From Macrostomum hystrix (lineage: Eukaryota; Animalia; Platyhelminthes), in the NCBI GenBank assembly GCA_950097015.1, contig CATNEN010000034.1:6944001-7008000 (forward strand): a stretch of 64,000 bases of DNA, written 5' to 3'. This document shows, one piece after another, positions 3,467 through 62,027 of the stretch (position 1 is the first letter of the stretch; every line of letters begins with the position of its first letter). The notes beneath the pieces were generated by a model, which was not told the origin of the DNA, ran no database searches, and saw nothing but the letters and a program-made list of their open reading frames with translations. The position numbers were made by a program, and so were the translations under genes.

Positions 3467-5587
3467 ATGCTGTCCTGCCCGTTCCTGAACCATCTGCCCA
3501 GCGGCCTGATCCAGTCGCGGCCTTGGTCCCTGCTGCGCTTTGCCCAACGCTGCCCCGTCATTGGCAAGCACATCCAGCGAGCCATGACCACCGGGGACCA
3601 GCTAGCGTCTCTGCCGCAGCTGCAGCATCAGCAGCAGTCGGCCTCTCTGCCTCCGCCGCCGCCTCCGCCTTCGCAGGTGCCGCAGCAGAAGCAGGTTGAG
3701 AAGTGCTCAACTAAATCTGCCGCTCCTTCTGGCCACTGTCCGTTTCTTAGCGGCCGCCTTGACGCCGCTGATGCCGCCGTCTGCGGCCTGTCGCCGCCCA
3801 GCCAGTGTCCGTACAGCCGCATGGCCGGCCGGCCCCTCACCGTCTGCTGCATGGCCGAGGAGCGACCGAGCCCTCAGCCGGCGGCTTCGTCCGAGCTGGC
3901 CGCCGCTGTAGCAGCCGCCGCCCCGGCCTATAACTACAAGGCTAAATGCGAGGAACAGCTGCAGCGCAAGCGAGCCGATCACAGCTATCGGGTGTTTCGC
4001 AAGGTCAACAGGCGCGGCCCGAGCTTCCCCCTGGCTGAGGAGCACACCGGCTTCCCTAAGGACATCACAGTATGGTGCAGCAACGACTACCTGGGCATGA
4101 GCTGGCATCCCAGGGTGCAGGAGGCGGTCATTCAGGCCGCCAGGCAGCACGGAGTTGGATCCGGCGGCACGCGCAACATATCGGGCAACACCATTCACCA
4201 TGAGGCTCTGGAGGCAGAACTGGCCGACTGGCACGGCAAGGAGGCCGCCCTGCTCTTCACCTCTTGCTACGTGGCTAATGAGGCCACGCTGCACACGCTG
4301 GGCCAGCTGCTGCCAGGCTTGGTGTTTCTGTCGGATTCTGGCAATCACGCCAGCATGATTCACGGAATACGGACTAGCGGCTGCCGCAAGGTGAGCTTTT
4401 GCGCCCATAAGCATTGACTAGTGTTCCAGTTTATTCAGTTTTTATTGCTTTTAGGGTTAGTTAAGTCCCGTTTTCTTCCCAGATCCCCAGTGAAGTCCCG
4501 TTTTTTCCCAGACCCCAGTGAAGTCCCGTTTTCTTCCCAGATCCCCAGTGAAGTCCCGTTTTTTCCCAGACCCTAGTGAAGTCCCGTTTTCTTACCAGAT
4601 CCCCAATGAAGTCCCGTTTTTTCCCAGACCCCAGTAAGTGTCCCGTTTTATTCCCAGACCCCAGTGAAGTCCCGTTTTCTTCCAAGATCCCCAGTGAAGT
4701 CCCGTTTTATTCCCAAATCCCCAATTAAATCCTGTCTTAACATCCCTAATAAATGAAACACTTATTTCATTCCTCAGATAATTTTCCCGCACAACAATGT
4801 CAACCGTCTGCGCGAGGAGCTGCTGAAGCTGCCACGCGAGGCGCCCAAACTGGTAGCATTTGAGACCGTCCACTCCATGACTGGCGACATCAGCCCGCTG
4901 GGCGATCTGTGCAGCCTGGCCCACCAATTCGGCGCGCTGAACTACGTAGACGAAGTGCACGCCGTCGGCATGTACGGCAGCCAGGGCGCCGGTGTCGGCG
5001 AGCGGGACAACTGCCTGCCCAGCATGGACCTCATCAGCGGCACCCTTGGCAAGGCCATCGGCAACATCGGCGGCTACGTCGCTGGCGACGCCACCGTCAT
5101 CGACGCCATTCGCAGCTACGCCAGCGGCTTCATCTTCACTACCAGCCTGCCGCCGACTGTGCTAGCCGGGGCTCGGGCCTCCCTGGCCGTACTGCGCTCG
5201 GCCGAAGGCGTCGAGCTTCGCCAGCGTCACCAGGCCTCCGTCCGGTTGCTCAGAGACGCCCTGCAGTCCCGCGGCCTACCGGTGATCCCGGCGCCCAGTC
5301 ACATCATACCGCTGCACGTTGGCGATCCGCAGGTTGCTCAGGCCATCTCCGAGCACATGATGCACAAGTGCGGCGCCTACATTCAGGCCATTAATTATCC
5401 CACGGTTGCTAGGGGCGACGAGCGGCTCCGCCTGGCCCCGACTCCGCATCATACCCAGCCCATGATTGAGCGCCTGGCCAACCAGCTGGCTGAAGCCTTT
5501 CGCCTGGAGGGCTCGCACCTTCTGGAGCCCGCCGCCTTATCGGCTGGAGCTCCGCCTCTGTGTCAGCAGCTGGGCATGGCGGCTTGA
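3467..5587 (+). CDS. ALAS: 5-aminolevulinate synthase (mitochondrial, PLP-dependent). Exons 3467-4390 and 4778-5587, 577 aa; possible 9-aa N-terminal extension from 2500-2516
   Basis: Motifs VWCSNDYLGMS, GSGGTRNISG, LFTSCYVAN, SDSGNHASMIHGI, VAFETVHSM, VDEVHAVGMYG, SGTLGKA (PLP lysine), FIFTTSLPP, QAINYPTV and LRLAPTPHH; N-terminal CP heme-regulatory motifs. The phase-0 GT-AG intron 4391-4777 restores ...GCRK|IIFPHNNV. Confidence 0.97.
4455..4735. repeat. About 31-bp minisatellite (CCCCAGTGAAGTCCCGTTTTCTTCCCAGAT-like) filling the ALAS coding intron
   Basis: Directly visible and confined between donor 4391 and acceptor 4777. Confidence 0.9.
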
Positions 5588-6200: not shown

Positions 6201-7084
6201 TTAAATATACAATTGTGGGCGGGATTTAAATCTGTGAAGAGGCCTAGAGAGTTTTGGTGAAACAACTGCTTTAGCTCCCTGTAAGAAATTTGCTTTAAAA
6301 AGCTTTTCGCTCACTTTTTTGTCAAACGAGCTCTTTTTTCCCTTTAGCAGTTTCGCTTTGTTGTTGCAACGCATCGCGTACTGTATGCTGTTGTCCAAGT
6401 TTAACTGCAGTTTCAAAGCCAGCAGCTTATTATGATGATCAAAGTAAAAGATACCTTATTATAGCATTATTGTCCGCACAAAAGCCAATGCTACTCATTT
6501 GTTAAGCGCGTCACAAATTCACGAATTAAATTAAACTATCAATCCATTTTTTAAAGACGGATATTTATCAGTTTTCAATTTTCTGTGTGGAAAATTCTCC
6601 CCGCGAATGTTTGCAGTTTAATTTTTCTTTCTAATTACCAGACATTCACGGGGGGATCAGCCGTGCTTTGCTGTTTTTTTGGTTCTTCTCCGTTTGATTC
6701 CATTTGGCACTCTGTAAATTGTGGGATGTTTGTTGCAGGAGTGCCAAATGGATTCTTTTTCAGCTAAGCAAAGTATTGTTATTTACGGAAAGAATATTTA
6801 TGCTTTAATTTGTAGGACTTTCTGTTCACAAATAGCATTCACATGAGTTTTCTCTCATGTAATCGTCTATGTCTGTGACTGTCATTGTAATGTGCTGTTG
6901 CGCAAAATTTGATTTAATAGATATTTACAAGTAATTTATTTCCGTTTGAAAGCGCAAACATAGCGAATATAGCCATTATTTCACATAGCGGATATCCCTA
7001 ACTGTTTCTTTTGGCGTTTCGTCACCACATGCTGCAGAATGGTTGCTTTCGTGTCTCTTGTTTTCCACTGTCTAATAATCTAGA

Positions 7085-8685
7085 ATGGATTGTTGCTAAC
7101 TGGTAGGATGTGGAATGGATGTTTGCTAACTGGTAGGATGTGGAATGGATGTTTGCTAACTGGTAGGATGTGGAATGGATGTTTGCTAACTGGTAGGATG
7201 TGGAATGGATGGTTGCTAAATCGTAGGATGTGGAATGGATGGTTGCTAACTGGTAGGATGTGGAAGGGATGGTTGCTAACTCGTTGGATCTGGAAGGGAT
7301 GGTTGCTAACTCGTAGGATCTGGAAGGGGTGGTTGCTAACTCGTAGGATGTGGAAGGGGTGGTTGCTAACTCGTAGGATGTGGAAGGGGTGGTTGCTAAC
7401 TGGTAGGATGTGGAAGGGATGGTTGCTAACTCGTAGGATGTGGAAGGGGTGGTTGCTAACTGGTAGGATGTGGAAGGGATGGTTGCTGACTGGTAGGATG
7501 TAAAAGGGATGGTTGCTAACTGGTAGGATGTGGAAGGGATGGTTGCTAACTGGTAGGATGTGGAAGGGATGGTTGCTGACTGGTAGGATGTGGAAGGGAT
7601 GGTTGCTAACTGGTAGGATGTGGAAGGGATGGTTGCTGACTGGTAGGATGTAAAAGGGATGGTTGCTAACTGGTAGGATGTGGAAGGGATGGTTGCTGAC
7701 TGGTAGGATGTGGAAGGGATGGTTGCTAACTGGTAGGATGTGGAAGGGATGGTTGCTAACTGGTAGGATGTGGAAGGGATGGTTGCTAACTCGTAGGATG
7801 TGGAAGGGATGGTTGCTAACTGGTAGGATGTGGAAGGGATGGTTGCTAACTGGTAGGATGTGGAAGGGATGGTTGCTAACTGGTAGGATGTGGAAGGGAT
7901 GGTTGCTAACTGGTAGGATGTGGAAGGGGTGGTTGCTAACTCGTAAGATGTGGAAGGGATGGTTGCTAACTGGTAGGATGTGGAAGGGATGGTTGCTAAC
8001 TGGTAGGATGTGGAAGGGATGGTTGCTAACTGGTAGGATGTGGAAGGGATGGTTGCTAACTGTTAGGATGTGGAAGGGATGGTTGCTAACTGGTAGGATG
8101 TGGAAGGGATGGTTGCTAACTGGTAGGATGTGGAAGGGATGGTTGCTAACTGGTAGGATGTGGAAGGGATGGTTGCTAACTGTTAGGATGTGGAAGGGAT
8201 GGTTGCTAACTGGTAGGATGTGGAAGGGATGGTTGCTAACTGGTAGGATGTGGAAGGGATGGTTGCTAACTGTTAGGATGTGGAAGGGATGGTTGCTAAC
8301 TGGTAGGATGTGGAAGGGATGGTTGCTAACTGGTAGGATGTGGAAGGGATGGTTGCTAACTGGTAGGATGTGGAAGGGATGGTTGCTAACTGGTAGGATG
8401 TGGAAGGGATGGTTGCTAACTGGTAGGATGTGGAAGGGATGGTTGCTAACTGGTAGGATGTGGAAGGGATGGTTGCTAACTGGTAGGATGTGGAAGGGAT
8501 GGTTGCTAACTGGTAGGATGTGGAAGGGATGGTTGCTAACTGTTAGGATGTGGAAGGGATGGTTGCTAACTGGTAGGATGTGGAAGGGATGGTTGCTAAC
8601 TGGTAGGATGTGGAAGGGATGGTTGCTAACTGGTAGGATGTGGAAGGGATGGTTGCTAACTGTTAGGATGTGGAAGGGATGGTTA
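7085..8685. repeat. 30-bp minisatellite (TGGAAGGGATGGTTGCTAACTGGTAGGATG), about 53 copies
   Basis: Highly homogeneous tandem array; it explains the MWKGWLLTGR ORFs. Confidence 0.97.
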
Positions 8686-10545: not shown

Positions 10546-13437
10546 CAGAACAACCCCTACAAGAACTGCATGCCAACTGTGTGGCCAGGGAACAATTCGA
10601 AGAAAAGGTGAGAGTCCTTAAAAACCTGAGGCGCAGATACAATAGGCTTTTGGCTGCTCATAAGAGATCTAAGAAAAGTGCTAAGGCCATTGAAATCCTG
10701 CGTCGGACGGTACAGAGCAAGTACAGAAAAATTCGATCTCTGCGCTCAAAGCACAGGCAAATTAAACAGAGAGCCAAAACATTGAAGGACGCAATTCTGG
10801 ATCTAAAGGCCAAGTGCATTTTAAACGAAGCTGCAGCATCTCGATTGAATTTCTTGACCTCCGATTCACTGCTGAGCAGCATCGTGCCTTGCAATAGAAA
10901 AAGGACAAAGAGGTTCTCTGACGAAGTGCGCAAATTCGCCTCTGCATTGAATTTCTATAGTCCAAAGGCTTATGAGTATGTACGAAAGTACTTTCAGCTT
11001 CCGCATCCTGCGTCACTTAGAAAATGGCTCTCAAATGCAAAGTGCTTTCCAGGGTTTTGCGATCAGGCTTTCCAGGAACTTTCGCGGCGACGCAGCTCCA
11101 CTGACGGCCAAGCCTTTGACTACTGCAACGTTGTTGCTGATGAAATGTCGCTGGAGTCGATGATTGAATGGAATTCAAGCGAAGGTATGTTTTTGGCTAC
11201 GTTGACAAAGGTGAAGGCAAACCAAGTGATCAGGAGGCATCTTCGGCACTGGTAGTGATGGCAGTGGGGCTTAAGAGCTATTGGAAGCTGCCTTTAGGGT
11301 ATTTTCTAGTGAATGGAGTTGACGGCGAATTTCTTTCGAGCGTTGCAGAGGAATCCATTCAGCGACTGTACCAGGTTGGCGTCATAGCAACATCATTCAC
11401 ATGCGATGGAACTCTGCACAACATTCGAGCGATCGAACTCCTTGGCTCCAGGATAAGTTCTCCGAACGAGGTCGTCGCCTGCTTCCCGCACCCCTGCGAT
11501 CCTAGCATTTAGGTTGCAGCCTTCCTGGATGTGCCTCACATGTTAAAGCTGATTCGCAATCAGTGGCAGTCACTGGGAAGATTTGTTTGGCCGAACAGAG
11601 GAAATATTGAATGGAAATATGTTTCCATGTTGCAGCAAGTACAAGAAAGTCATGGACTCCGACTTGGAAACAAGTTAAGCAGGCATCAACTTTGCTAATT
11701 TAAAGATGAAGGTCTATTTGGCATCACAACTGTTTAGCAAGTCAGTGGCCGACTCTTTGCGATGGGTGCATCAGCAAGGTGTGATCGGATTTGAGCACTC
11801 TGATGTGCTAGTCACCGCAGATTTCGTTGAGCACATGAATGATTTGTTCGACGCTTTCAATTCCAAGCGGCTGGTCAGTTATGGCGCCAAAATGGCTCTT
11901 AGAGCTGACAATCAGTCGGATTGGATCGGTTTCTTCTCTAGCTCGATCGAACTTCTCTGTAGCCGGCTGCTACTCCGGCTGGCTGCAAGATAGTAGAAAC
12001 CGCAAAGAAGACTTCCTAGGCTTCATCACCAACTGCCATGGCATTATGGAGCTCGCTTACTTACTTTGCAGGGGGGCCTGGGGCACTTGACGCACAAACA
12101 CAGGAACGGCATGCCCCCAGGCCGGCGAACTAGGCGAGAGCCGCCCATCGCGCCGCCTCCCCTGAGCAGGCACCTCACACACACAGCAGCAAGCCAAGCG
12201 GGGAAGGGGGCGGCAGCCGGAGTGCCTCTCACCCCAGGCCCGCACACGCACAGAGCAGACCAAGCCGGGGCGGAAGGCTGATAGAAATCAGTCCTCAGGG
12301 GGGGGGGCGGGTGACGAGTGTACACTTTATCCAATCGCGCTGACGGAAATCCAGATGAGCGCGCGGCGGTGTACACCCGCCCCCCAGCCACCCCCCCGCA
12401 AGGTCTAACGCCCCAGCGCCAACGCACAAGCTCAAACAACGCAGAACAGGCACACAGAAGGTAGGAGCGAAGCTATTTTTCAAGCTTTGATTGCACGAAA
12501 TAAGGTGCACCTCCGCCGGTCGCTACTGTCCAAACCCCCCCAACAAGTCCCGAAATTAATCGTGACCTGAAGGGTGAATCGAACTAGCGTCCTTTGGAGT
12601 GCGAGGCAGCGACGTTAGCCCGTGACCCCCCTCGCCCCTTTATGGAGCTCGCTAAGTATTTATTTTCAACTGGCGAAGTCTTCTTTCTTTGCACTTACAA
12701 GCTTTCGCAGGATTTTCTCGAACTGTTTTTTAATGCAGTAAGGCTACGAAATGGCTGGAACCATAACCCAACGCCCACGAAATTTCGCTCAGCATTCAGG
12801 CAGCTGTTGGTGCATGCCGGAGGTGGAATTCTACAGTCCGTGAGTCCGAATGTGAGGCAGCAGGATGCCACTATTCAGTTATCATTGTCTTGTCTGCCAT
12901 CATCATCAGGGACAGCAGCCATGGAAGCAGATGAAAGCTCAAAATGAAATGGGACTGAGTCTGGGTTCAATCCAACACTGCAAGAATGCATCGGTGTGTG
13001 AAATTTGCCAGTCCATCGTGTGCTATATCGCAGGCGCGGTCTTCCGAAGAATGATGAAAGCAGTTGAATGTGCTCCGTGCAGGTCAGCTCTGATCGCAAG
13101 CTCTGAGACGCCAGGAGCTTCACGCGGACCATGCTCACTCGTTGCCATAAAAAATGTTTTGAACAAGAAAGGAACTGGCGGCCTGATTTTTCCTAGCAGC
13201 AATGTCCTGTGGGTGCTGCTCAATGCAGAGACTGTTGTTCGGCGTGCCAGCTACTGCAGCAGCGGATTCTCTAGTGCTGTAGCTGTTGAGGAGATTCTGC
13301 GCATGTCAATCGATCTGTTCCCTGAACTGGACTCTCATTCGGCATCCGCGAGTATCAGCATTGAGTCTCACAAGCTGCATTTGATTCGAGTAATGGCTAT
13401 GCTTTATAAAAAATATTCGAATGAAGAAGCTGGCTAA
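10546..13437 (+). mobile_element. Decayed P-element/THAP9-like DDE transposase (several frameshifts, stop at about 11510, SINE insertion; no THAP domain or TIRs found)
   Basis: Motifs across ORFs 10581-11255, 11168-11512, 11706-11993, 11839-12090, 12594-12947 and 12865-13437: FYSPKAYEYVR..LPHPASLRKW, VADEMSL, WKLPLGYF, FTCDG, LDVPHMLKLIRN, KMKVYLASQLFSKSVA, MNDLFDAFNS, TYKLSQDFLELFFNAVR..GWNHNPT, YIAG..CAPC, GGLIFPS. Confidence 0.9.
12058..12639 (-). mobile_element. tRNA-derived SINE-like insertion (about 582 bp) inside the transposase, with a 14-bp TSD
   Basis: TTATGGAGCTCGCT is duplicated at 12044-12057 and 12640-12653. Minus-strand B-box GTTCGATTC lies about 55 nt from the 5' end, and there is an (AAGT)n-like tail. 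Removal restores CHGIMELA|KYLFSTGEV. Confidence 0.8.
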
Positions 13438-16566: not shown

Positions 16567-16713
16567 GGCCAATCAGAACAGTCACCGGGAGCAGTGGGGT
16601 AACAGTTCTCCTACTGGGGACCAGGCAAGGAAGAGGGCCGCGCGGAGATGAGAAGAAATGGGAGCGCGTCTTGTTTCCAAGCTAGCATTTAACCAAACAT
16701 TGCATTATAAAAA
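16567..16713 (+). promoter_or_regulatory. Core promoter of the WSSGFamide prohormone gene: CCAAT box (16567-16576) and TATA box (16706-16713)
   Basis: GGCCAATCAG and TATAAAAA, the latter about 85 nt upstream of ATG 16795. Confidence 0.6.
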
Positions 16714-16794
16714 GGATAAGCCAGCAGGCCGCGCACCTTCACGTTGGATCACTTAAGCAGGACGGGCATTCAAAGCGACCCTTTGACAAAGAAA

Positions 16795-18105
16795 ATGACA
16801 AAGCTGCTGCTGCTGTTGCTGCTGGCTGCCATGCTGGCTGCTGCTGTGCTTATCCGCACCGCCAGTGCCAGAGGTGAGTTCGTTTGGCAGCCTTGCCTCA
16901 GAGGCTCAGCGCGAAAAATAGCGCCAATTTAAATTTTAAGCGACGAACGAAAATTTTTTTCCAATTTAGAACTTCTGGAAGATGACAGGCTGGACCATGA
17001 AGTCACTGATGCCGCTGTGTGGCGAGGTGGGGACAAACGCGCGGGAGGCTGGAGCAGCGGATTCGGCAAACGTGCTGGAGCCTGGAGCAGCGGATTCGGA
17101 AAACGTGCTGGAGCCTGGAGCAGCGGATTCGGCAAACGTGCTGGAGCCTGGAGCAGCGGATTCGGCAAACGCCCTGCTTGGAGCAGCGGATTCGGCAAAC
17201 GTGCTGGAGCCTGGAGCAGCGGATTCGGCAAACGTGCTGGAGCCTGGAGCAGCGGATTCGGAAAACGCCCTGCTTGGAGTAGCGGATTCGGCAAACGTGC
17301 TGGAGCCTGGAGCAGCGGATTCGGAAAACGTGCGGGAGACTGGAGCAGCGGATTCGGAAAACGTGCTGGAGCCTGGAGCAGCGGATTCGGAAAACGCCCT
17401 GCTTGGAGCAGCGGATTCGGAAAACGTGCTGGAGCCTGGAGCAGCGGATTCGGAAAACGTGCTGGAGCCTGGAGCAGCGGATTCGGAAAACGCCCTGCTT
17501 GGAGCAGCGGATTCGGAAAACGTGCTGGAGCCTGGAGCAGCGGATTCGGAAAACGTGCTGGAGCCTGGAGCAGCGGATTCGGAAAACGCCCTGCTTGGAG
17601 CAGCGGATTCGGAAAACGCCCTGCTTGGAGCAGCGGATTCGGAAAACGTGCTGGAGCCTGGAGCAGCGGATTCGGAAAACGTGCGGGAGCCTGGAGCAGC
17701 GGATTCGGAAAACGTGCTGGAGCCTGGAGCAGCGGATTCGGAAAACGTGCGGGAGCCTGGAGCAGCGGATTCGGAAAACGCCCTGCTTGGAGCAGCGGAT
17801 TCGGAAAACGTGCTGGAGCCTGGAGCAGCGGATTCGGAAAACGTGCTGGAGCCTGGAGCAGCGGATTCGGAAAACGTGCGGGAGCCTGGAGCAGCGGATT
17901 CGGAAAACGTGCTGGAGCCTGGAGCAGCGGATTCGGAAAACGCCCTGCTTGGAGCACCGGATTCGGAAAACGCCCTGCTTGGAGCAGCGGATTCGGAAAA
18001 CGTGCTGGAGCCTGGACCAGCGGATTCGGCAAGAGGCTTATCAAATACCAGCCCGAAAGCTCAGAGACAGAACTTGATGCCGAGATCGAGTCACCGCTGG
18101 ATTAA
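16795..18105 (+). CDS. Multi-copy prepro-neuropeptide, 404 aa. Exons 16795-16873 and 16970-18105; 31 amidated peptides (AGAWSSGFa, PAWSSGFa and variants)
   Basis: Signal peptide MTKLLLLLLLAAMLAAAVLIRTASA. The phase-1 GT-AG intron (gtgag...tttag) joins it in frame to ELLEDDRLDHEVTDAAVWRGGDKR, then 31 units each ending G-K-R, then an acidic tail. AATAAA at 18251. Confidence 0.95.
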
Positions 18106-18250: not shown

Positions 18251-18256
18251 AATAAA
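18251..18256 (+). terminator. Polyadenylation signal of the prohormone gene
   Basis: AATAAA about 145 nt after the stop codon. Confidence 0.6.
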
Positions 18257-33147: not shown

Positions 33148-36100
33148 TTAAGCGATGTTTAACAATTTCTTAAACGCCTTCCTGAATTCATTATTGAATA
33201 TAGTATATATGAGAGGGTTGAGGGTGCTATTCACATAGCCCAGCCAGACTATGAACACGGATATGCGCCTGTCGTACTTGCACAGCGAGCTCTTGAATAG
33301 TTCGTTGTCGATGTTCTTCAGGCAGGCGGCCCACATCAGGTTGGAGATAAAGAAAGGCAGCCAACAGAGTAGGAACACGCCTGCAATGGTTGAGTTGAAA
33401 ATCTATTCAGATTTAGTTTATACTTGTAGAAACAAAAATGGATAAAATACAATTTAGATTTAGCTTTAGATTTAGCTTTAGATTTAGCTTTAGATTTAGC
33501 TTTAGATTTAGCTTTACATTTAGCTTTAGATTTAAATTTAGATTAGATTTAGATTAAACTCTTTAGGAGCCTATCTTCGAAGTCGTTAGACTTTGTCTTT
33601 ATTAAGGTTCTTCTCTGAGACATCTTGGGAGAATGCAGCTACGACTTTCACCACCTCAGTGACATCATTCTGCGTGAAGAGGATGTCAGTGAGACGGAAA
33701 GTATCGCAGGTCAATCTAATGGCGTCAGAACTAGAAGACAGCTCCTGACACAACCTGTCATGACATAATAGTAGCTGCCTTCGAAATTCTTCATTGAAAG
33801 TCAAGCCTGCCTCACTGGCTTTCTCACCTGACATTTTCCTTCGCCGTGGCACCCCAACCTGACCTGTGTTCTCCCAAGAGTAGCATCGCTACTGTGTCAC
33901 GTGATGCTTGTCTAAAAATAGTCTAAAGTATTTGGACTATTTTTAGTATCTCAGGGTCATCTGTCACGTGGTGTCTCTCTTTCATGGCTATTTTTAGCAA
34001 ACCGGAGTGATATTTCGCTAAACCCTGATCTCAGTGCCTATGCATACAAATTATAAAATGGTAATATCCTATGCCCTTTCCAGTTACATATCTATTCTTT
34101 ATGAAGATATGTAACATATTATTGACCATTGTAGATTTATTATACATTTTAGATAAAAATGAAAAAAGAATTGCGCTTAAGTTAAAAATGCAAAAGGGAA
34201 TTCAAATTTTTCTAAGAAATATGATAGCTTCGATGACGACTTGAATTGTTAATTTTCTCACCAATAAAATTGAAATTGCGAATAGTCTAGCCCAACGACA
34301 AAAGATAAGACGAGACAGAAAAAAAATTGCAACCAAATTACATATAAAAACATAACATAAGAGCACCAAATCACGACATACGCGATAAAATGTATAAAAT
34401 TGTATGTAAAGGGAAATGCTCTGCTTGTCTCACAGTCTCTCTGCTTATCTCACAGTCTCTCTGCTTATCTCACAGTCTCTCTGCTTATCTCACAGTCTCT
34501 GCTTATCTCACAGTCTCTCTGCTTATCTCACAGTCTCTCTGCTTATCTCACAGTCTCTGCTTATCTCACAGTCTCTCTGCTTATCTCACGGTCTCTCTGC
34601 TTATCTCACAGTCTCTGCTTATCTCACAGTCTCTCTGCTTATCTCACAGTCTCTCTGCTTATCTCACAGTCTCTGCTTATCTCACAGTCTCTCTGCTTAT
34701 CTCACAGTCTCTCTGCTTATCTCACAGTCTCTGCTTATCTCACAGTCTCTCTGCTTATCTCACGGTCTGTCTGCTTATCTCACAGTCTCTCTGCTTATCT
34801 CATAATCTCTCTGCTTATCTCACAGTCTCTCTGCTTATCTCACAATCTCTCTGCTTATCTCACGGTCTGTCTGCTTATCTCACGGTCCGTCTGCTTATCT
34901 CACAGTCTCTCTGCTTATCTCACAATCTCTCTGCTTATCTCACAGTCTCTCTGCTTATCTCACAGTCTCTGCTTATCTCACAGTCTCTCTGCTTATCTCA
35001 CGGTCTCTCTGCTTATCTCACAGTCTCTGCTTATCTCACAGTCTCTCTGCTTATCTCACAGTCTCTCTGCTTATCTCACAGTCTCTCTGCTTATCTCATA
35101 ATCTCTCTGCTTATCTCACAGTCTCTCTGCTTATCTCACAATCTCTCTGCTTATCTCACGGTCTGTCTGCTTATCTCACAGTCTCTCTGCTTATCTCACA
35201 GTCTCTCTGCTTATCTCGTCTCTCTGCTTATCTCACAATCTCTCTGCTTATCTCACGGTCTGTCTGCTTATCTCGCAGTCTCTCTGCTTATCTCACAGTC
35301 TCTCTGCTTATCTCACGGTCTGTCTGCTTATCTCACAGTCTCTCTGCTTATCTCACAGGTCTCTCTGCTTATCTCACAGTCTCTCTGCTTATCTCACAGT
35401 CTCTCTGCTTATCTCACGGTCTGTCTGCTTATCTCACAGTCTCTCTGCTTATCTCACAATCTCTCTGCTTATCTCACGGTCTGTCTGCTTATCTCACAGT
35501 CTCTCTGCTTATCTCACAGTCTCTCTGCTTATCTCACAGTCTCTCTGCTTATCTCACAGTCTCTCTGCTTATCTCACGGTCTGTCTGCTTATCTCACAGT
35601 CTCTCTGCTTATCTCACAGTCTCTCTGCTTATCTCATAATCTCTCTGCTTATCTCACAGTCTCTCTGCTTATCTCACAATCTCTCTGCTTATCTCACGGT
35701 CTGTCTTCTTATCTCACAGTCTCTCTGCTTATCTCACAATCTCTCTGCTTATCTCACGGTCTGTCTGCTTATCTCACAGTCTCTCTGCTTATCTCATAAT
35801 CTCTCTGCTTATCTCACAGTCTCTCTGCTTATCTCACAGTCTCTCTGCTTATCTCACAATCTCTCTGCTTATCTCACGGTCTGTCTGCTTATCTCACGGT
35901 CTGTCTGCTTATCTCACAGTCTCTCTGCTTATCTTACAATCTCTCTGCTTATCTCACGGTCTGTCTGCTTATCTCACAGTCTCTCTGCTTATCTCACGGT
36001 CTGTCTGCTTATCTCACAGTCTCTCTGCTTATCTCACGGTCTGTCTGCTTATCTCACAGTCTCTCTGCTTATCTCACAGTCTCTCTGCTTATCTCACAGT

Positions 36101-39100
36101 CTCTGCTTATCTCACAGTCTCTCTGCGTATCTCACGGTCTCTCTGCTTATCTCACAGTCTCTCTGCTTATCTCACAATCTCTCTGCTTATCTCACGGTCT
36201 GTCTGCTTATCTCACAGTCTCTCTGCTTATCTCACAGTCTCTGCTTATCTCACAGTCTCTCTGCTTATCTCACAGTCTCTCTGCTTATCTCACGGTCTGT
36301 CTGCTTATCTCACAGTCTCTCTGCTTATCTCACAGTCTCTCTGCTTATCTCATAATCTCTCTGCTTATCTCCCAGTCTCTCTGCTTATCTCACGGTCTGT
36401 CTGCTTATCTCACGGTCTGTCTGCTTATCTCACAGTCTCTCTGCTTATCTCACAATCTCTCTGCTTATCTCACGGTCTGTCTGCTTATCTCACAGTCTCT
36501 CTGCTTATCTCACAGTCTCTGCTTATCTCACAGTCTCTCTGCTTATCTCACAGTCTCTCTGCTTATCTCACAGTCTCTGCTTATCTCACAATCTCTCTGC
36601 TTATCTCACAGTCTCTCTGCTTATCTCACAGTCTCTCAGCTTATCTCACAGTCTCTCTGCTTATCTCACAGTCTCTGCTTATCTCACAGTCTCTCTGCTT
36701 ATCTCACAGTCTCTCTGCTTATCTCACAGTCTCTGCTTATCTCACAGTCTCTCTGCTTATCTCACAGTCTCTCTGCTTATCTCACAGTCTCTGCTTATCT
36801 CACAGTCTCTCTGCTTATCTCACAGTCTCTCTGCTTATCTCACGGTCTGTCTGCTTATCTCACAGTCTCTCTGCTTATCTCACAGTCTCTCTGCTTATCT
36901 CACAATCTCTCTGCTTATCTCACAGTCTCTGCTTATCTCACAGTCTCTCTGCTTATCTCACAGTCTCTCTGGTTATCTCACAGTCTCTGCTTATCTCACA
37001 GTCTCTCTGCTTATCTCACAATCTCTCTGCTTATCTCACGGTCTGTCTGCTTATCTCACAGTCTCTCTGCTTATCTCATAATCTCTCTGCTTATCTCACA
37101 GTCTCTCTGCTTATCTCACAGTCTCTCTGCTTATCTCAAAATCTCTCTGCTTATCTCACGGTCTTTCTGCTTATCTCACGGTCTGTCTGCTTATCTCACA
37201 GTCTCTCTGCTTATCTCACAATCTCTCTGCTTATCTCACGGTCTGTCTGCTTATCTCACAGTCTCTCTGCTTATCTCATAATCTCTCTGCTTATCTCACA
37301 GTCTCTCTGCTTATCTCACAATCTCTCTGCTTATCTCACGGTCTGTCTGCTTATCTCACAATCTCTCTGCTTATCTCACGGTCTGTCTGCTTATCTCACA
37401 GTCTCTCTGCTTATCTCACGGTCTGTCTGCTTATCTCACAGTCTCTCTGCTTATCTCATATTCTCTCTGCTTATCTCACAGTCTCTCTGCTTATCTCACA
37501 GTCTCTCTGCTTATCTCACAATCTCTCTGCTTATCTCACGGTCTGTCTGCTTATCTCACGGTCTGTCTGCTTATCTCACAGTCTCTCTGCTTATCTCACA
37601 GTCTCTCTGCTTATCTCACGGTCTGTCTGCTTATCCCGCATTCCGTCAGCTCTTTCCATAACAGCGTTGTTTTCATTTCTTATTCGACAATGAGGCCCAC
37701 CCTAACCCATCGCTCGCAGAGTTAATTTTACAGACTTCTTTGGCGTGCCTAATCTACATTTTTGCATGAGGCCGCTAATCAAGCTGTCGTAGCTGTTCCG
37801 ATCGAATCTGAAGGAAAAAAACTTTCAGGAAAACAACTTCGCAATAAGGAGAGGCCGAGGGGTAGCGCTGAGCTCACTTGAATGGTACTATACGAAATAC
37901 ACAATTGTATGCGACAATTACTGCCGCAGAGATGAAAGCAGCAGTGAAATATGAGATAAGATTGAACTCAAAATTAGATTTATAAAAGCTATATAGTTTG
38001 CTTATAATATTAATTGTCAAAAAAGTGAAAGTGAAAAGCACTATCAAAGTTGGCACAGTTAGCATTAAGACTGAAAAATCTAAGGATTGCTGGGTCCTGG
38101 TACAGCCCAGCTCCCAATAGCTCCCAATCCGAATGACCGATTTCCTTGAAAGTCTTAACGCTCATTACGATGAACTAACTTTCAAAGCCATCCGACATCA
38201 CCATCATCGAGATATTCAGCGATTCTCTGTATAACCCTCAATGGCGAATCCATATTAGTTTAATAATATCACACTTCATGCCCGCTTCTAGCATCCTTCA
38301 GACCCGCTTCTAGCATCCTTCAGGCCCGCTTCTAGCATCCTTCAGACCCGCTTCTAGCATCCTTCAGACCCGCTTCTATCACACTTCATGCCCGCTTCTA
38401 GCATCCTTCAGACCCGCTTCTAGCATCCTTCAGACCCGCTTCTATCACACTTCATGCCCGCTTCTATCACACTTCATGCCCGCTTCTAGCATCCTTCAGA
38501 CCCGCTTCTATCACACTTCATGCCCGCTTCTATCACACTTCATGCCCGCTTCTAGCATCCTTCAGACCCGCTTCTATCACACTTCATGCCCGCTTCTAGC
38601 ATCCTTCAGACCCGCTTCTAGCATCCTTCAGACCCGCTTCTATCACACTTCATGCCCGCTTCTAGCATCCTTCAGACCCGCTTCTATCACACTTCATGCC
38701 CGCTTCTAGCATCCTTCAGACCCGCTTCTAGCATCCTTCAGACCCGCTTCTATCACACTTCATGCCCGCTTCTAGCATCCTTCAGACCCGCTTCTATCAC
38801 ACTTCATGCCCGCTTCTAGCATCCTTCAGACCCGCTTCTATCACACTTCATGCCCGCTTCTAGCATCCTTCAGGCCCGCTTCTAGCATCCTTCAGGCCCG
38901 CTTCTAGCATCCTTCAGACCCGCTTCTATCATCCTTCAGGCCCGCTTCTATCATCCTTCAGGCCCGCTTCTAGCATCCTTCAGACCCGCTTCTATCATCC
39001 TTCAGGCCCGCTTCTAGCATCCTTCAGACCCGCTTCTATCATCCTTCAGGCCCGCTTCTATCATCCTTCAGGCCCGCTTCTATCACACTTCAGACCCGCT

Positions 39101-42100
39101 TCTATCATCCTTCAGGCCCGCTTCTAGCATCCTTCATGCCCGCTTCTAGCATCCTTCAGACCCGCTTCTATCATCCTTCAGGCCCGCTTCTAGCATCCTT
39201 CAGACCCGCTTCTAGCATCCTTCAGACCCGCTTCCAGTATCCTTCAGACCCACTTCTATCATCCTTCAGGCGCTCTTCTTTCATCCATCAGGCGCTCTTC
39301 TTTCATTCTTCAGACCCGCTTCTATCATCCTTCAGGCCCGCTTCTAGCATCCTTCAGACCCGCTTCTATCATCCTTCAGGCCCGCTTCTAGCATCCTTCA
39401 GGCCCGCTTCTAGCATCCTTCAGACCCGCTTCTAGCATCCTTCAGGCGCTCTTCTTTCATCCATCAGGCGCTCTTCTCTCATTCTTCAGACCCGCTTCTA
39501 TCATCCTTCAGGCGCTATTCTATCATCCTTCAGACCCGTTTCTATCATCCTTCAGACCCGCTTCTAGCATCCTTCAGACCCGCTTCTAGCATCCTTCAGG
39601 CGCTCTTCTTTCATCCATCAGGCGCTCTTCTCTCATTCTTCAGACCCGCTTCTATCATCCATCCTTCAGGCGCTATTCTATCATCCTTCAGACCCGCTTC
39701 TATCATTCTTCAGGCGCTCTTCTTTCATCCTTCAGACCCGCTTCTATCATCCTTCAGACCTGATACTATTATCTTTCAGTCCCGCTTCTAACAATAAAGC
39801 AAACGATCAATAAAATATAATCAGCAATGATAGCCGAGATGGTTATACGATGCAATTTTGTGAGCAGAAAAATGATACCCATATTGGTGGTTTTTGCCAC
39901 CAGTCACCCCGACGAGAATCGTTGAATATCCCATGGTCCATCGACTGTTAATGCGTTGTAGATACGAGTAGTACATTCGAACTCCGAGATGCTAGCTCTA
40001 AGCTATTGTTCTGCTGATAAAGTTTTATCGATAATTAACTTGAGAAGTTGTTGACACTCACCGCAAACTTCAAATTGTCCGGCGGGAATCACAACACGCA
40101 TGCGGGTAATTGGGAATTAAACAAGAGCTTTTACATCTCATTGTGATTATGGTGGACATTTCAATCAGGAAATTATAATCTTCTGATAAAGCTTAAAGTG
40201 CAACTGTTGCTATAAACTGAGAGTGCTAAAAGTGAGCACTAAGAGTGAGGTGGGTGTAGGAAGTGAGGGTTTGGAGGGACATGATGTGAGGTGGCTGTAG
40301 GGAGTTGGGGTTTAGGAATGGCATAGAGTGAGGTGGGTGTAGGAAGTGAGGGTTTGGAGGGACATGATGTGAGGTGGCTGTAGGGAGTTGGGGTTTAGGA
40401 ATGGCATAGAGTGAGGTGGGTGTAGGAAGTGAGGGTTTGGAGGGACATGATGTGAGGTGGCTGTAGGGAGTTGGGGTTTAGGAATGGCATAGAGTGAGGT
40501 GGGTGTAGGAAGTGAGGGTTTGGAGGGACATGATGTGAGGTGGCTGTAGGGAGTTGGGGTTTAGGAGAGGCGTTGTGTGAAGTGGGTAAGGAAGCTAGGT
40601 TTTTTAGTTCCATGGATTGAGGTAGGTGCAGAAACGGGCTTCCTAGGTGGCGTGGAGTAAGGTGGGTGGGGAAGTGGGGATTCTATTTAGGCAGGACTGG
40701 GGTGGGTGTAGGAATGTCTGTTTATCAGTGGCTAGATAACACTTTATAGTTACACACTCCGTTTAAGATCAAGGTACAAGTTTTGCCGGGGATATCAGAA
40801 TGCTATTGAAGCCATTTTGTTGTGCCATTAAGTAGCAAATAGGAATAATCTCAGAAATGTGTTTTTACAACTCACCCAACACAATGGCCAGCGTTTTGGT
40901 AGCCTTCTTCTCACGTCTGGCGGCCGATCGCTCAGCCTTGGTGCCGGCGGATTTTCGCTTCTTCTTTTTGATCTTCATTCGGAACATTTGCTGCTGCTGC
41001 TGCTGCTGCTTTCCAGGTCGCTCCGGTGGGCCCTCAGTTAGACGGGTCTCGCAAGCGTCGCTATGAGCTACGCTGTTGTCAGAGGTTGACGGCCCGGCAA
41101 AGTTCATGCTCTCGTTTAACGGCACTGAATTGTTCGTCGACAAAGTGAAGTCGTCATCGGCGTCGAGATCGACGATGCCAGACGGGCTCCGGCCGGCGAG
41201 TCGCTGCTGTTGAGTTGTGAGTGCGGAATGAGTGCGCCTGTCCACTAGCTTTGTTGTCACGTTAGTGCAACTTTGTCAAGATTTCCTTATGCCCTAACTC
41301 ACGGAGCAACATCTGACTCTCAACTCCTAGCCGCCACCACTCATGTGCTAACCTCCCTCCCTGCCTTCTAGATATACACCCACCTCAGTTCTTGCCCCTC
41401 CAAACATATCATCTACACTCACCTCACTTCTTGCCCCTCCAAACATATCATCTACACTCACCTCACTTCTTGCCCCTCCAAGCATATCATAAACACCCAC
41501 CTCACGCCCTGTCCCTCTGCCCCTTTTGATACACCTACCTAAACCTATCATAGGCACCTACCTGACTGCCTGTCCCTCTGCCCTCATCTGCTCCCCGTCT
41601 GATACACCCACCTCACTCCCTGTCCCTCTGCCCCAATCTGATACACCCACCTCACTCCCTGTCCCTCTGCCCCAGTCTGATACACCCACCTCACTCCCTG
41701 TCCCTCTGCCCCAATCTGATGCACCCACCTCACTCCCTGTCCCTCTGCCCCAGTCTGATACACCCACCTCACTCCCTGTCCCTCTGCCCCAATCTGATGC
41801 ACCCATCCTCACTCCCTGTCCCTCTGCCCCAGTCTGATACACCCACCTTTACTCCCTGTCCCTCTGCCCCAATCTGATACACCCACCTCTCTTACTGACA
41901 AACTCTTATGCATCCGACTCCCTCTGTCTTTCTGACCCACTAAGGTCGCCCCGACTGTTTGATATACGAGTATCAATAAGACTTTGTCAGCAAAAGCCCT
42001 GCCTTTGCATTGAGTTGAGGCTGCTGCAGATGGTCGTTGCCGGTGCGGGCAACGCTAACGCTGAGGTTATTGGGCCTTTTCGGGTTCGTCCGCACGAGCA

Positions 42101-59453: not shown

Positions 59454-62027
59454 TCAAAGCAAGACGCAAGACTTCAGCTTCTCCTGGAGATCCTCATCAG
59501 CGACGGCCACCTCCGTTCTGTCCGCGCTGGTCTCAGTGATGGTCTCATCTCTGTCGCCTCCTTGTTGGCTTGACTCGCTTCTGGCTTGAGCGGCCTGCAT
59601 GAGCCGGATGTCCTCCTGGGTGACGGCGGCCCCCGCCAGGGCGGCGTTCTGCCGCTGCTCCTCGGCCAGCGCAGTCCAGAATGTGGAGGCGGGCGGGAAG
59701 CCGATGAAGCCGTACACCCGCTGGTGGCCCTTGAAAGCGTAGCTGTGTTGCAGGCTGAGGTTCACGGTGCAGCTGAGGTCCTCCTTGCCATCCAGGCGCC
59801 TCTGCCGGGTGTTGACGTGCTTCCTCACGTACGAGTTCATCGCGTGCAGCAGCCTGTCCAGGAACTTGATGTCTGTCTGCGGTGATCGCGAGTCCGAGGC
59901 GTGCGCCGGATGCTGCACTGAGCCGAAGCCCAGCAACGGCTGCTCCTGATGCGGGATGAGCACAAAGTCCTCGAAGATGTCGAAGTCTCCCCTCTGCTGG
60001 CGAGCTGGCTTCCGACCAGGAGAGGCGAGCTCCGGCGGCGGGTTCCGGCGGGTCACCAGCAGCTCCGGCATCTGGACCAGCTGCAGCTTCCGCCTGACGT
60101 TCTTCTCATACAGGTTGGACGCCAGGCGCGGGTCCTTGTCGCTGGGGCTGGAGCTCTCCTTGGAGTAGGTCCAGAACTCGGTCACGTAGCTCTTGTCTGG
60201 CCAGTTGGGGATCGCGCAGCTGTTTTTCTTCTGGCGCTCACCGGGTTTGACTGGCGGATTGCAGACCTCGAAGATCTCCAGGTATCTGGCAGGATCAGGC
60301 ACGATGATGTACGCGAAGAATGCCGGGAATGCATTGGTTCGGTACTTGCCGTAGGGCATCTGCAGCGTGCAGTGGTTGAGGTTGTAGCTCAGCACGATGT
60401 CTGTTGCCGCCTTGACAAGGTCTTTGCGCTCTGTTGCGTCCAGACAGTCGTAGAGCTGCTTATGGAACTTGTAGTGCAGCAGGAACCTGGGCAGGCAGTG
60501 CACCATATCGAATCGCACCGTGAAGCTGTCGTTTTTTCTGTGTGCGAACAAAAGGTCGTAGTACCTAGCAGGTCTGTCCATTGGGCTACTGGTACTACTT
60601 CCATCTTTCCTCTCACAGCATTCGCATGGATATCGTTCTTCACTTCCGTCCACAGTGTCTTGACGGAGCTCTTCTCGAAACCTATCTCGCGCTGCTTGCT
60701 CTTCTGGGCTAAGCGCGTCGGAAGTTGGGGGTGCCACCAGGCCACACAGACTGAGCAGCTGGGCTTTGCGCGCCTTCTCCTGCTCCGATTGCCTCTGAAC
60801 CTCCGTGGGATTTTCGAGCGACTCCTTTTTGATCGGCCTAATAAATCTATCAATACGCAGGTTGAAATCGACCGTATCAGATCCCACCTTTGACTGGTGC
60901 GTATTACCGGTAGTCTTTAGCGCCTCGCCATTTTCATTTATGCCTGAGTTGCTTTCGTCGTCTTCTCGAATGACCATGCCGTCAGGCCGGTCCAGTCCAG
61001 CACCTCCGGTACGTCCAGCGAGACTGCGCCAGTCGTCAGCAACGCTAGGCCCAACGCTTTTGGATTTCCTCTTGACCAACCAGGCGAATTCGTAGTCGTC
61101 AACGCTTTCACCTGTCGCATGTGGATGCTTGGACCTCTGCTTGTGCTGAAGGTTGCGATCTTGCAGCTGCAGCTGCTCATGCCTAGCGAGGCGGAACAGT
61201 TGCTGACTTGGCAGTAATCCGGAGTCGTGATCCTCTCTGGCCTGAACGCATGGATCCATCGGTAATTCAACGTTGCCTTGTTCGTCTGTCACCTGCCCCA
61301 CACGGTCCTCGTGAAAGAAGTTCTTTACGTGCTTTTTTAGCGACCCGAGTACGTTCGTTTTCTTTTTCTGTTCATTCTTGGTTATCTGGATGCTTTGCGA
61401 GAGGATCCTAGAGAAGTCGATCGTCTGCACGCGCTCGGTAGTTGGGGCGAAAATGTCTTCATCTGCTACTGAGGTATCACTTTGTTCTGTCGCAGAGGCG
61501 CTCGACATCTCGTCTGCTTTCGAGATTGAGAAATCTTCAGAAACTTTCTCGCCCTTTCTTTCACCATCCTTCGACAAAGATTGTGATGAGCCGGTTTGTT
61601 TGACCAACTCCGATGGCCCTAGAACTGAAGCTCGGGCTGCATTGGACTGCGAGCTTCGAATGCTCGCTGCGCTGGGTGTGCGAGATTCGATGCGAGTAGC
61701 TTGCGACACTGTTGAAGTGGGGTGCGATTCGGCACTTCCAAAACTGCGCCGCGAATGTGCCTTACTTCCTGGAACCTTTAAGTACAAATCGCTTCTGCTT
61801 ACAGCCAACGATTCAACCTTTTTTGTTAAATCACTTTGGCTTGGAAGCTGGGTAATTGACGCTGTTCCGACATTGCCTGGCGGCCGCAAGCTCTGCGTTC
61901 CGCTGGTTGACCGCTGGCCAAGCAGTCCGATGGCCGATGCCGCCCTATGCTGAAGGCGCGGCCCAGTTGGCGAGGTCCTGATGCCAATGGACGACGCTGA
62001 GCATTTGTTAATCTCTGGAGAGAGCAT
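59454..62027 (-). CDS. Uncharacterised 857-aa single-exon protein: Ser/Thr-rich disordered N-half and globular C-terminal about 300 aa (possibly tandem HIT-like)
   Basis: 2574-nt uninterrupted, non-repetitive ORF starting at ATG; strong C/G third-position bias in the 3' half; no family recognised with confidence. Confidence 0.8.
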   Translation of the reverse strand: MLSPEINKCSASSIGIRTSPTGPRLQHRAASAIGLLGQRSTSGTQSLRPPGNVGTASITQLPSQSDLTKKVESLAVSRSDLYLKVPGSKAHSRRSFGSAESHPTSTVSQATRIESRTPSAASIRSSQSNAARASVLGPSELVKQTGSSQSLSKDGERKGEKVSEDFSISKADEMSSASATEQSDTSVADEDIFAPTTERVQTIDFSRILSQSIQITKNEQKKKTNVLGSLKKHVKNFFHEDRVGQVTDEQGNVELPMDPCVQAREDHDSGLLPSQQLFRLARHEQLQLQDRNLQHKQRSKHPHATGESVDDYEFAWLVKRKSKSVGPSVADDWRSLAGRTGGAGLDRPDGMVIREDDESNSGINENGEALKTTGNTHQSKVGSDTVDFNLRIDRFIRPIKKESLENPTEVQRQSEQEKARKAQLLSLCGLVAPPTSDALSPEEQAARDRFREELRQDTVDGSEERYPCECCERKDGSSTSSPMDRPARYYDLLFAHRKNDSFTVRFDMVHCLPRFLLHYKFHKQLYDCLDATERKDLVKAATDIVLSYNLNHCTLQMPYGKYRTNAFPAFFAYIIVPDPARYLEIFEVCNPPVKPGERQKKNSCAIPNWPDKSYVTEFWTYSKESSSPSDKDPRLASNLYEKNVRRKLQLVQMPELLVTRRNPPPELASPGRKPARQQRGDFDIFEDFVLIPHQEQPLLGFGSVQHPAHASDSRSPQTDIKFLDRLLHAMNSYVRKHVNTRQRRLDGKEDLSCTVNLSLQHSYAFKGHQRVYGFIGFPPASTFWTALAEEQRQNAALAGAAVTQEDIRLMQAAQARSESSQQGGDRDETITETSADRTEVAVADEDLQEKLKSCVLL

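Follow-up and report, generated by a model that had tools for sequence, protein, structure and literature searches.

The array of short coding repeats at positions 16795-18105 of the stretch analysed here raises two questions: whether it is a working neuropeptide gene or a minisatellite that happens to read as one, and, if it is a gene, to which peptide family its products belong. The stretch, referred to below as the window, comprises 64,000 nucleotides of the genome of the flatworm Macrostomum hystrix (contig CATNEN010000034.1, positions 6,944,001 to 7,008,000, forward strand), and the locus that carries the array is referred to as the window gene. We are confident that the window gene is a real, spliced and transcribed neuropeptide precursor gene, from which the release of peptides is predicted. 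The family assignment is less firm; we consider it moderately probable that the window gene and a paralogue in the same genome are macrostomid members of a W-x3-[Y/F]-amide family that includes planarian NPP-8 and molluscan Wx3Yamide.

Structure and expression of the precursor gene

Joining the two exons of the window gene (the region was read and translated and the model was rebuilt by script) yields a product of 404 residues. A precursor of this length with a signal peptide and 31 units ending in Gly-Lys-Arg had been proposed in the initial annotation, and every one of its counts was reproduced by translation and by the rebuilt model. Exon 1 translates as MTKLLLLLLLAAMLAAAVLIRTASAR, a 26-residue Leu-rich signal region followed by one base of a codon that is completed in exon 2; the signal peptide was judged by eye from the N-terminal hydrophobicity. 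The features of the gene are as follows, the first and the last being taken from sequence reading only.

16706-16712, plus strand: putative TATA-like box (TATAAAA), located 83-89 nt ahead of the ATG
16795-16873, plus strand: coding part of exon 1, 79 nt; Met, a signal peptide rich in Leu and Ala (MTKLLLLLLLAAMLAAAVLIRTASA-R) and the first base of a Glu codon divided by the intron
16874-16969, plus strand: intron, 96 nt, GTGAGT...TTTAG, phase 1
16970-18105, plus strand: exon 2, a single exon that holds all of the peptide units
16970-17040, plus strand: acidic N-terminal propeptide (E)LLEDDRLDHEVTDAAVWRGGD at the start of exon 2, ending at the first KR cleavage site
17041-18036, plus strand: array of 31 peptide units of 33 or 30 nt, x(2-3)-W-S-S-G-F followed by Gly-Lys-Arg
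18037-18105, plus strand: acidic C-terminal propeptide LIKYQPESSETELDAEIESPLD, a 22-residue tail (from translation), and the stop codon TAA (18103-18105)
18251-18256, plus strand: candidate polyadenylation signal AATAAA, ~146 nt past the stop

Evidence for transcription comes from public contigs that are 99-100% identical to the window and cover exon 1 and the start of exon 2. One contig in each of three runs (X4, X5 and X1, from two studies) joins position 16873 to position 16970, skipping 96 nt with GT..AG boundaries; an exact skip of this kind is the signature of a spliced transcript and is hard to explain otherwise. The initial annotation had made its proposal depend on such a transcript, and the contigs from all three runs remove 16874-16969. 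It had also called the intron as 16873-16970; the intron itself is upheld, while its two ends are each corrected by one base. Two of the contigs start at 16763/16764, downstream of the TATA-like box. The third (run X4) starts upstream of it, at 16661, which could reflect an alternative upstream start, read-through or an effect of contig assembly.

The 31 units comprise 19 copies of AGAWSSGF, eight of PAWSSGF and one each of AGGWSSGF, AGDWSSGF, PAWSTGF and AGAWTSGF. Every unit is preceded by Lys-Arg and followed by Gly-Lys-Arg, such that a dibasic site and a glycine amidation signal are present throughout, and Trp, Gly-Phe and Gly-Lys-Arg are retained in 31/31 units. The units exist in 14 versions at the DNA level and in six at the peptide level, the variation being almost all synonymous; the nonsynonymous changes are four singletons (A to G, A to D and, twice, S to T). 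Tandem Repeats Finder (TRF) reports a 33-bp period with 31 copies at 17035-18029, with higher-order periods of 96 and 129 bp that fit growth of the array by blocks of three or four units. The calculated [M+H]+ values of the two commonest predicted peptides are 781.363 for AGAWSSGF-NH2 and 750.357 for PAWSSGF-NH2.

A paralogue is present in the same genome (G000:C39:1440551-1441084, locus L003; exon 1 at 1270-1339, 70 nt, intron at 1340-1426 and exon 2 at 1427-2043) with a layout consisting of a signal-peptide exon, an 87-nt phase-1 GT..AG intron and a single repeat exon. Upstream of its ATG lies a ATTATAAAAGGA element that resembles the TATA-like box of the window gene. The product of 228 residues contains 15 units, in most of which AGQRWSSGF or SGQRWSSGF precedes G-K-R, with Trp at position -5 in 15/15; the calculated [M+H]+ value of AGQRWSSGF-NH2 is 994.485. 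Two units carry G-K-P instead of G-K-R, a change that should block cleavage and give fused peptides. The core W-S-S-G-F-G-K-R is encoded by TGG AGC AGC GGA TTC GGA AAA CGT in the window gene and by TGG TCC AGT GGA TTC GGC AAG CGA in the paralogue. Five of these eight codons differ, all of them synonymously and in one case by a move from one Ser codon box to the other; the core and its predicted processing signals are therefore under purifying selection.

In the processing that we propose, the signal peptide would route the precursor into the secretory pathway and would then be removed, prohormone convertases would cut at each of the 32 Lys-Arg sites, a carboxypeptidase would remove the basic residues and peptidylglycine alpha-amidating monooxygenase would convert the exposed glycine into a C-terminal amide. 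The output would be up to 31 hepta- and octapeptides with the core A-W-S-S-G-F-NH2, which may act as neuronal or endocrine messengers through a G-protein-coupled receptor. The genome carries Cu2_monooxygen (PHM-type) domains and proprotein-convertase P-domain genes, and the processing machinery is therefore available; for the window gene itself, cleavage, amidation, neuronal expression and the type of receptor are predicted properties. Three points detract from the gene assignment: cleavage and amidation are deduced from sequence rules, the types of the runs that supplied the contigs are recorded as '?' or 'RNA?' and not formally as RNA, and the repeat is collapsed in the short-read contigs, so that the 31-copy count is that of the assembly alone.

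Probable affinity with NPP-8 and Wx3Yamide

Database searches were performed with single exons, the joined 404-residue model serving for counting only. With the exon-2 product as the query, an exhaustive HMMER search against 1.84 billion representatives returned Wx3Yamide-type precursors as its top matches (P0002 at an E-value of 9e-55 and P0003 at 7e-32; repeats inflate these E-values), with further precursors of the same type below them (P0006, P0008, P0009, P0011, P0013-P0016, P0021 and P0045). The top-match precursors encode runs of A-P-[GA]-W-x-x-x-Y-G-K-R or Q-Q-G-W-x-x-x-Y-G-K-R, and the named Wx3Yamide matches come from the bivalves Dreissena, Mya and Potamilus and from the gastropods Haliotis, Littorina and Batillaria. 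Allatostatin-A (AstA) precursors enter the ranking from an E-value of 1e-17, and insect leucokinin precursors are also present. In the reciprocal direction, a search of the genome (220 Mb in 42 contigs) with P0002 returned the window gene first (E = 3e-30); the gastropod precursor P0045 found no match in the genome, probably owing to its long spacers.

The similarity was examined with a C-terminally anchored matrix built from 16 mollusc precursors (184 copies, all W-x3-terminal by construction). The members of this set, each scored with itself left out, have a mean of 18.6 bits, a 5th percentile of 8.5 bits and a minimum of 1.9 bits. The planarian NPP-8 peptides score +14.0 to +15.5 bits and the peptides of the window gene and the paralogue +6.3 to +10.4 bits. 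On a corresponding matrix for insect AstA, the members of which score at least +9.1 bits, the ranges are -14.0 to -16.3 bits for NPP-8 and -4.4 to -8.4 bits for the window gene and the paralogue. NPP-8 falls well within the range of Wx3Yamide scores; the macrostomid peptides fall at the bottom of that range, and the AstA range does not include them.

Position by position, the agreement with the mollusc set is uneven. Trp is located five residues from the predicted amidated C-terminus in 31/31 window units. The window gene has an aromatic residue at the C-terminal position, where strict Tyr is lacking; Phe occupies this position in 4/184 mollusc copies. Ahead of Trp, among the 184 mollusc copies, W-2 is occupied by P in 91 and by Q in 74, and W-1 by G in 126 and by A in 20. 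The nine P-A-W units of the window gene have P at W-2, the 22 AG-x-W units have G, unlike the mollusc set, and the G-Q-R-W of the paralogue fits. Gln two residues before Trp is common to the paralogue, NPP-8 (G-Q-A-W and D-Q-V-W), gastropods (Q-Q-G-W) and a unionid (L-Q-S-W). Some mollusc copies are very similar to the flatworm core: QQGWHSGF-amide, which is one residue off, and QQGWHSHF-amide (both in P0045) and LQSWMSGY-amide (Potamilus). The Haliotis rubra gene (locus L027) has a 91-nt exon 1, a phase-1 intron three residues past the signal peptide and all of its copies in one exon, a layout that adds little weight, being common among secreted-protein genes.

The link within the phylum is provided by the planarian gene Smed-npp-8 (GenBank GU295189), the predicted peptides of which are DPRFSDQVWHSGY-amide, NYYNRFDGQAWYSGY-amide and NDAGDQAWYSGY-amide (Collins et al., 2010; PMC2953531, supplement). 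The initial annotation did not recognize WxxGF-amide as a described flatworm family, a view that finds no support, since Smed-npp-8 encodes A/V-W-x-S-G-Y-amide and matches at A, W, S and G, with Y in place of the terminal F. NPP-8 is said to have been predicted from the genome earlier, by McVeigh and coworkers in 2009. We infer that the relationship of the window gene to NPP-8 and Wx3Yamide is probably one of homology, beyond resemblance; rather than being a typical Wx3Yamide, the window gene is best placed in the broader W-x3-[Y/F]-amide group as a Phe-amide variant of very high copy number. No paper linking Wx3Yamide to flatworms or to NPP-8 was found in the literature searched, nor did its full texts yield any neuropeptide paper containing WSSGF, GF-amide or the like.

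Several observations weigh against this affiliation. The Trp column contributes most of the matrix score; without it, the window and paralogue peptides score between -0.1 and +4.0 bits. When the seven core residues were shuffled identically across units in 150 permutations, the real order was better than 147/150 for both Wx3Yamide (z = 2.6) and AstA (z = 2.4), and therefore the alignment scores alone cannot separate the two families. Kinship with leucokinin (FNSWG-amide) was rejected by the same control, the similarity being independent of residue order (z = 0.3). The family link is a motif of 5-8 residues with no similarity outside the repeats; the conserved first peptide of bivalves, LPGWxVYY-amide, is missing from the window precursor; and the C-terminal residue is Phe in 31/31 units versus Tyr in 178/184 mollusc copies. 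The named Wx3Yamide matches are all molluscan, with no annelid, nemertean or other spiralian link retrieved, and no other flatworm link was retrieved by sequence searches. No M. lignano orthologue turned up, in a collection that includes M. lignano proteins.

Alternative explanations

One alternative is that the gene belongs to a macrostomid-specific neuropeptide family, in which the resemblance to NPP-8 and Wx3Yamide is convergent, short aromatic-amide motifs arising repeatedly. The confinement of the likeness to 5-8 residues dominated by one Trp, the lack of conservation outside the repeat and the F-versus-Y terminal residue all favour this explanation, as does the ease with which peptide minisatellites are expanded in this genome. 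Word-index searches of 5.8 billion clusters with exon 2 of the window gene and of the paralogue, each limited to 8000 candidates, gave no homologue, that with the paralogue returning no match at all; the common G-K-R words make such searches uninformative on absence. A feature search of the ESM Atlas returned only generic multi-copy precursors, all below 0.9, the nearest clusters being arthropod and nematode prothoracicostatic peptide/MIP, tachykinin, helicostatin (AstA) and FLP-1, which we treat only as leads. Against convergence, A-W-x-S-G-aromatic-amide is shared with a planarian of the same phylum, and Q-x-W-x-S-G-[YF]-amide is common to the paralogue, NPP-8, one gastropod and one unionid. 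Moreover, a bivalve precursor and the window gene are each other's best matches, and the named Wx3Yamide-type matches are from molluscs, which like flatworms belong to the Lophotrochozoa, with none from arthropods, nematodes or deuterostomes. We regard convergence as unlikely, with some weight nevertheless to be given to it.

The initial annotation had singled out allatostatin-A/buccalin as the closest family. On this proposal the window gene would be a highly divergent flatworm AstA/buccalin precursor, with peptides that signal through an AstA/galanin-type receptor. The two have in common a hydrophobic amide, Gly at -2 and an aromatic residue at -5, and the order-dependence of the AstA similarity was described above. 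Buccalin A of Aplysia ends in A-F-S-G-G-L-NH2, and A-W-S-S-G-F agrees with it at A, S and G. A word-index search with exon 2 of the window gene yielded only a termite AstA prohormone (E = 1e-5, among the best 8000 candidates), and an AstA precursor used as a query had the window gene as its best match in the genome (E = 2e-7). The AstA slot in the genome also looks empty: F-x-G-G-L-G-K-R occurs twice, compared with three times in the control, no canonical F-x-G-G-L or Y-x-F-G-L array is found elsewhere and the Pfam Allatostatin family has no match anywhere in the genome.

The residues that define AstA are nevertheless wanting, since Phe at -3 and a Leu/Ile/Val-amide at -1 (two of the three defining residues) are replaced by Ser and Phe, respectively. 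Wx3Yamide precursors are ahead of every AstA precursor by ~37 orders of magnitude in E-value, the AstA matrix scores are negative and the exon-2 product does not match Pfam PF05953 at E-values of up to 10, with the reservation that this 11-position model has low power. On these grounds AstA/buccalin is not supported as the closest family. The one match of exon 2 in the Pfam scan, to the Spt5 C-terminal domain repeat, is spurious, a low-complexity artefact. Buccalin and Wx3Yamide are separate genes in oysters and scallops (PMC4200219; PMC5996578); as molluscs carry the one beside the other, a member of the Wx3Yamide group is not an AstA orthologue. AstA/buccalin is present in a polyclad and has been lost in many freshwater and parasitic flatworms (reviewed in PMC13551398), and such losses make an empty slot not unexpected. 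We consider an AstA/buccalin precursor improbable. A related proposal, that NPP-8, Wx3Yamide and the WSSGF peptides together form a Trp-type sister family of AstA/buccalin acting on AstA/galanin/kisspeptin-type receptors, is at best speculative and is slightly less probable still.

Minisatellites are very dense in the window: besides the array of the window gene there are more than 25 others, the periods of which are mostly not divisible by 3. Arrays that score 300 or more number above 25 and include those at 34419-37635 (20 nt × 163), 7083-8684 (30 nt × 53) and 38267-39790 (22 nt × 69). These arrays account for the pronounced GC skew in blocks at 20-28 kb and 34-40 kb of the window. In the array of the window gene all three forward frames and one reverse frame are open, and in so minisatellite-rich a window the open frame alone therefore proves nothing. 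Genome-wide, W-x-x-G-[FY]-G-K-R has 80 matches compared with three in a reversed control, and the only in-frame arrays of this motif are the window gene and the paralogue. Two further arrays, C33:1266125 (period 44) and C25:775721 (period 28), spell the motif by chance with noncoding periods.

Other candidate loci were also rejected. Loci L002, L004, L005, L007-L010, L012-L015 and L024-L026 are minisatellites, or have frames interrupted by stop codons or periods not divisible by 3, and none is a family member. Among these, L025 and L026 (G000:C24:4539427-4540313) have A-V-R-W-V-A-S-Y-D-K-Q repeats with a W-x3-Y spacing, but contain neither a Gly amide donor nor a dibasic site and are taken to be chance minisatellites. 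Locus L006 (G000:C8:2719117-2719896, minus strand, about 1170-2150) contains a K-R-S-S-M-G-F-G-K-R-L frame many times, but this is interrupted by TAG and another frame is the longest open reading frame (ORF); no exon for a signal peptide was seen, and the locus probably represents a minisatellite or a dead gene. Its SSMGF-amide-like frame recalls the nematode MGF-amides.

That the array of the window gene is itself a nonfunctional, coding-looking minisatellite or a decaying gene without a bioactive peptide, as its many open frames, the abundance of minisatellites around it and the two chance arrays (44 and 28 nt) could suggest, is very improbable indeed given a unit length that is a multiple of 3 and in frame with the signal-peptide exon across an intron removed from transcripts, the intact Trp, Gly-Phe and Gly-Lys-Arg in all units and the same eight residues in the paralogue despite its five synonymous codon changes.

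Three other features of the window lie outside the array. A 5-aminolevulinate synthase (ALAS) gene is located at 3467-5587 on the plus strand, with presequence and aminotransferase domains and at least two exons; its first exon shares 75% identity with the ALAS of Macrostomum lignano, compared with ~41% for the named matches that follow (flukes and snails), which places the genome in a macrostomid flatworm near to, but distinct from, M. lignano. An ORF at 10581-11255 on the plus strand contains P-element transposase-like helix-turn-helix and TNP-like RNase H N-terminal domains and corresponds to a THAP9/P-element-type transposase remnant. An ORF of 857 residues at 59454-62027 on the minus strand has no Pfam match.

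Implications and comparison with known systems

The window gene forms a sequence bridge between two orphan families that have been treated apart in the literature searched, in which the label 'mollusc or lophotrochozoan innovation' is attached to Wx3Yamide. Should this bridge prove sound, the family is older than the flatworm-mollusc split and a single receptor hunt would serve both phyla, parasitic flatworms included if they have retained the family. Whether the WSSGF-amides, NPP-8 and Wx3Yamide make up a single neuropeptide family, ancient within the Lophotrochozoa and served by a receptor of its own, is, in our estimation, an evenly balanced matter; if this is true, the macrostomid genes, in a worm amenable to RNA interference and transgenesis, would be the most practical entry to deorphanization and function. 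Flatworm neuropeptide catalogues are mainly based on planarians and parasites, and macrostomids branch early in the phylum and include a genetic model. To these catalogues the window gene adds a precursor with 31 copies that looks highly expressed and is missing from the public protein sets searched. The initial annotation had warned that gene predictors could miss such a gene, and its absence from the protein collections searched bears this out: they probably did. Coding minisatellites in this genome can thus conceal real peptide genes from repeat-masking pipelines.

Of the three systems compared, AstA/buccalin, second-ranked in the HMMER search, shares with the window gene multi-copy amidated peptides and a similar unit length. 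It differs at both ends of the core, with Tyr or Phe at -5 where the window gene has Trp and a Leu- or Ile-amide where the window gene has a Phe-amide. Compared by eye, the G-x-L-amide or F-x-G-G-L-amide end of buccalins is replaced by S-G-F in the window gene; scallop buccalins end in FFGSL, FFGTL and FYGSL.

Wx3Yamide was named in oysters as a family without evident resemblance to any known peptide (Stewart et al., 2014; PMC4200219), is also present in scallop (PMC5996578) and is an orphan family without an assigned function (PMC8398477). Its precursors resemble that of the window gene in their multi-copy K-R ... G-K-R units (10-11 residues in molluscs) with Trp at -5 and an aromatic amide, in the P-A-W or P-G-W ahead of the core (compare the PAWSSGF units), in rare natural Phe-amide copies and in the W-x-S-G-Y copies of Potamilus. 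They differ in that Thr, Met or Asp is usual at -2, where the window gene has Gly, and in the long acidic spacers of the mollusc precursors, which moreover belong to a different phylum.

NPP-8 comes from the same phylum and, as here, is a secreted precursor with peptides ending in Gly-Lys-Arg. It has been filed under 'miscellaneous amidated peptides', with no assigned receptor or function, and is expressed in the lateral cephalic ganglia and the intestine (Collins et al., 2010; PMC2953531); expression of NPP-8 is thus localized to tissues, whereas that of the window gene is known as presence in whole-run contigs. The NPP-8 precursor is a protein of 92 residues with three peptides of 13-15 residues separated by spacers, in contrast to the 31 back-to-back peptides of 7-8 residues in the window gene, and its peptides are Tyr-amides where those of the window gene are Phe-amides. 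The C-termini of NPP-8, ...QVWHSGY-NH2 and ...GQAWYSGY-NH2, conform to A/V-W-x-S-G-Y-amide, and in the one NPP-8 sequence compared (from Schmidtea) AWYSGY and AWSSGF of the window gene have four of their six residues in common (A, W, S and G) and differ conservatively (Y/F) at the amidated end.

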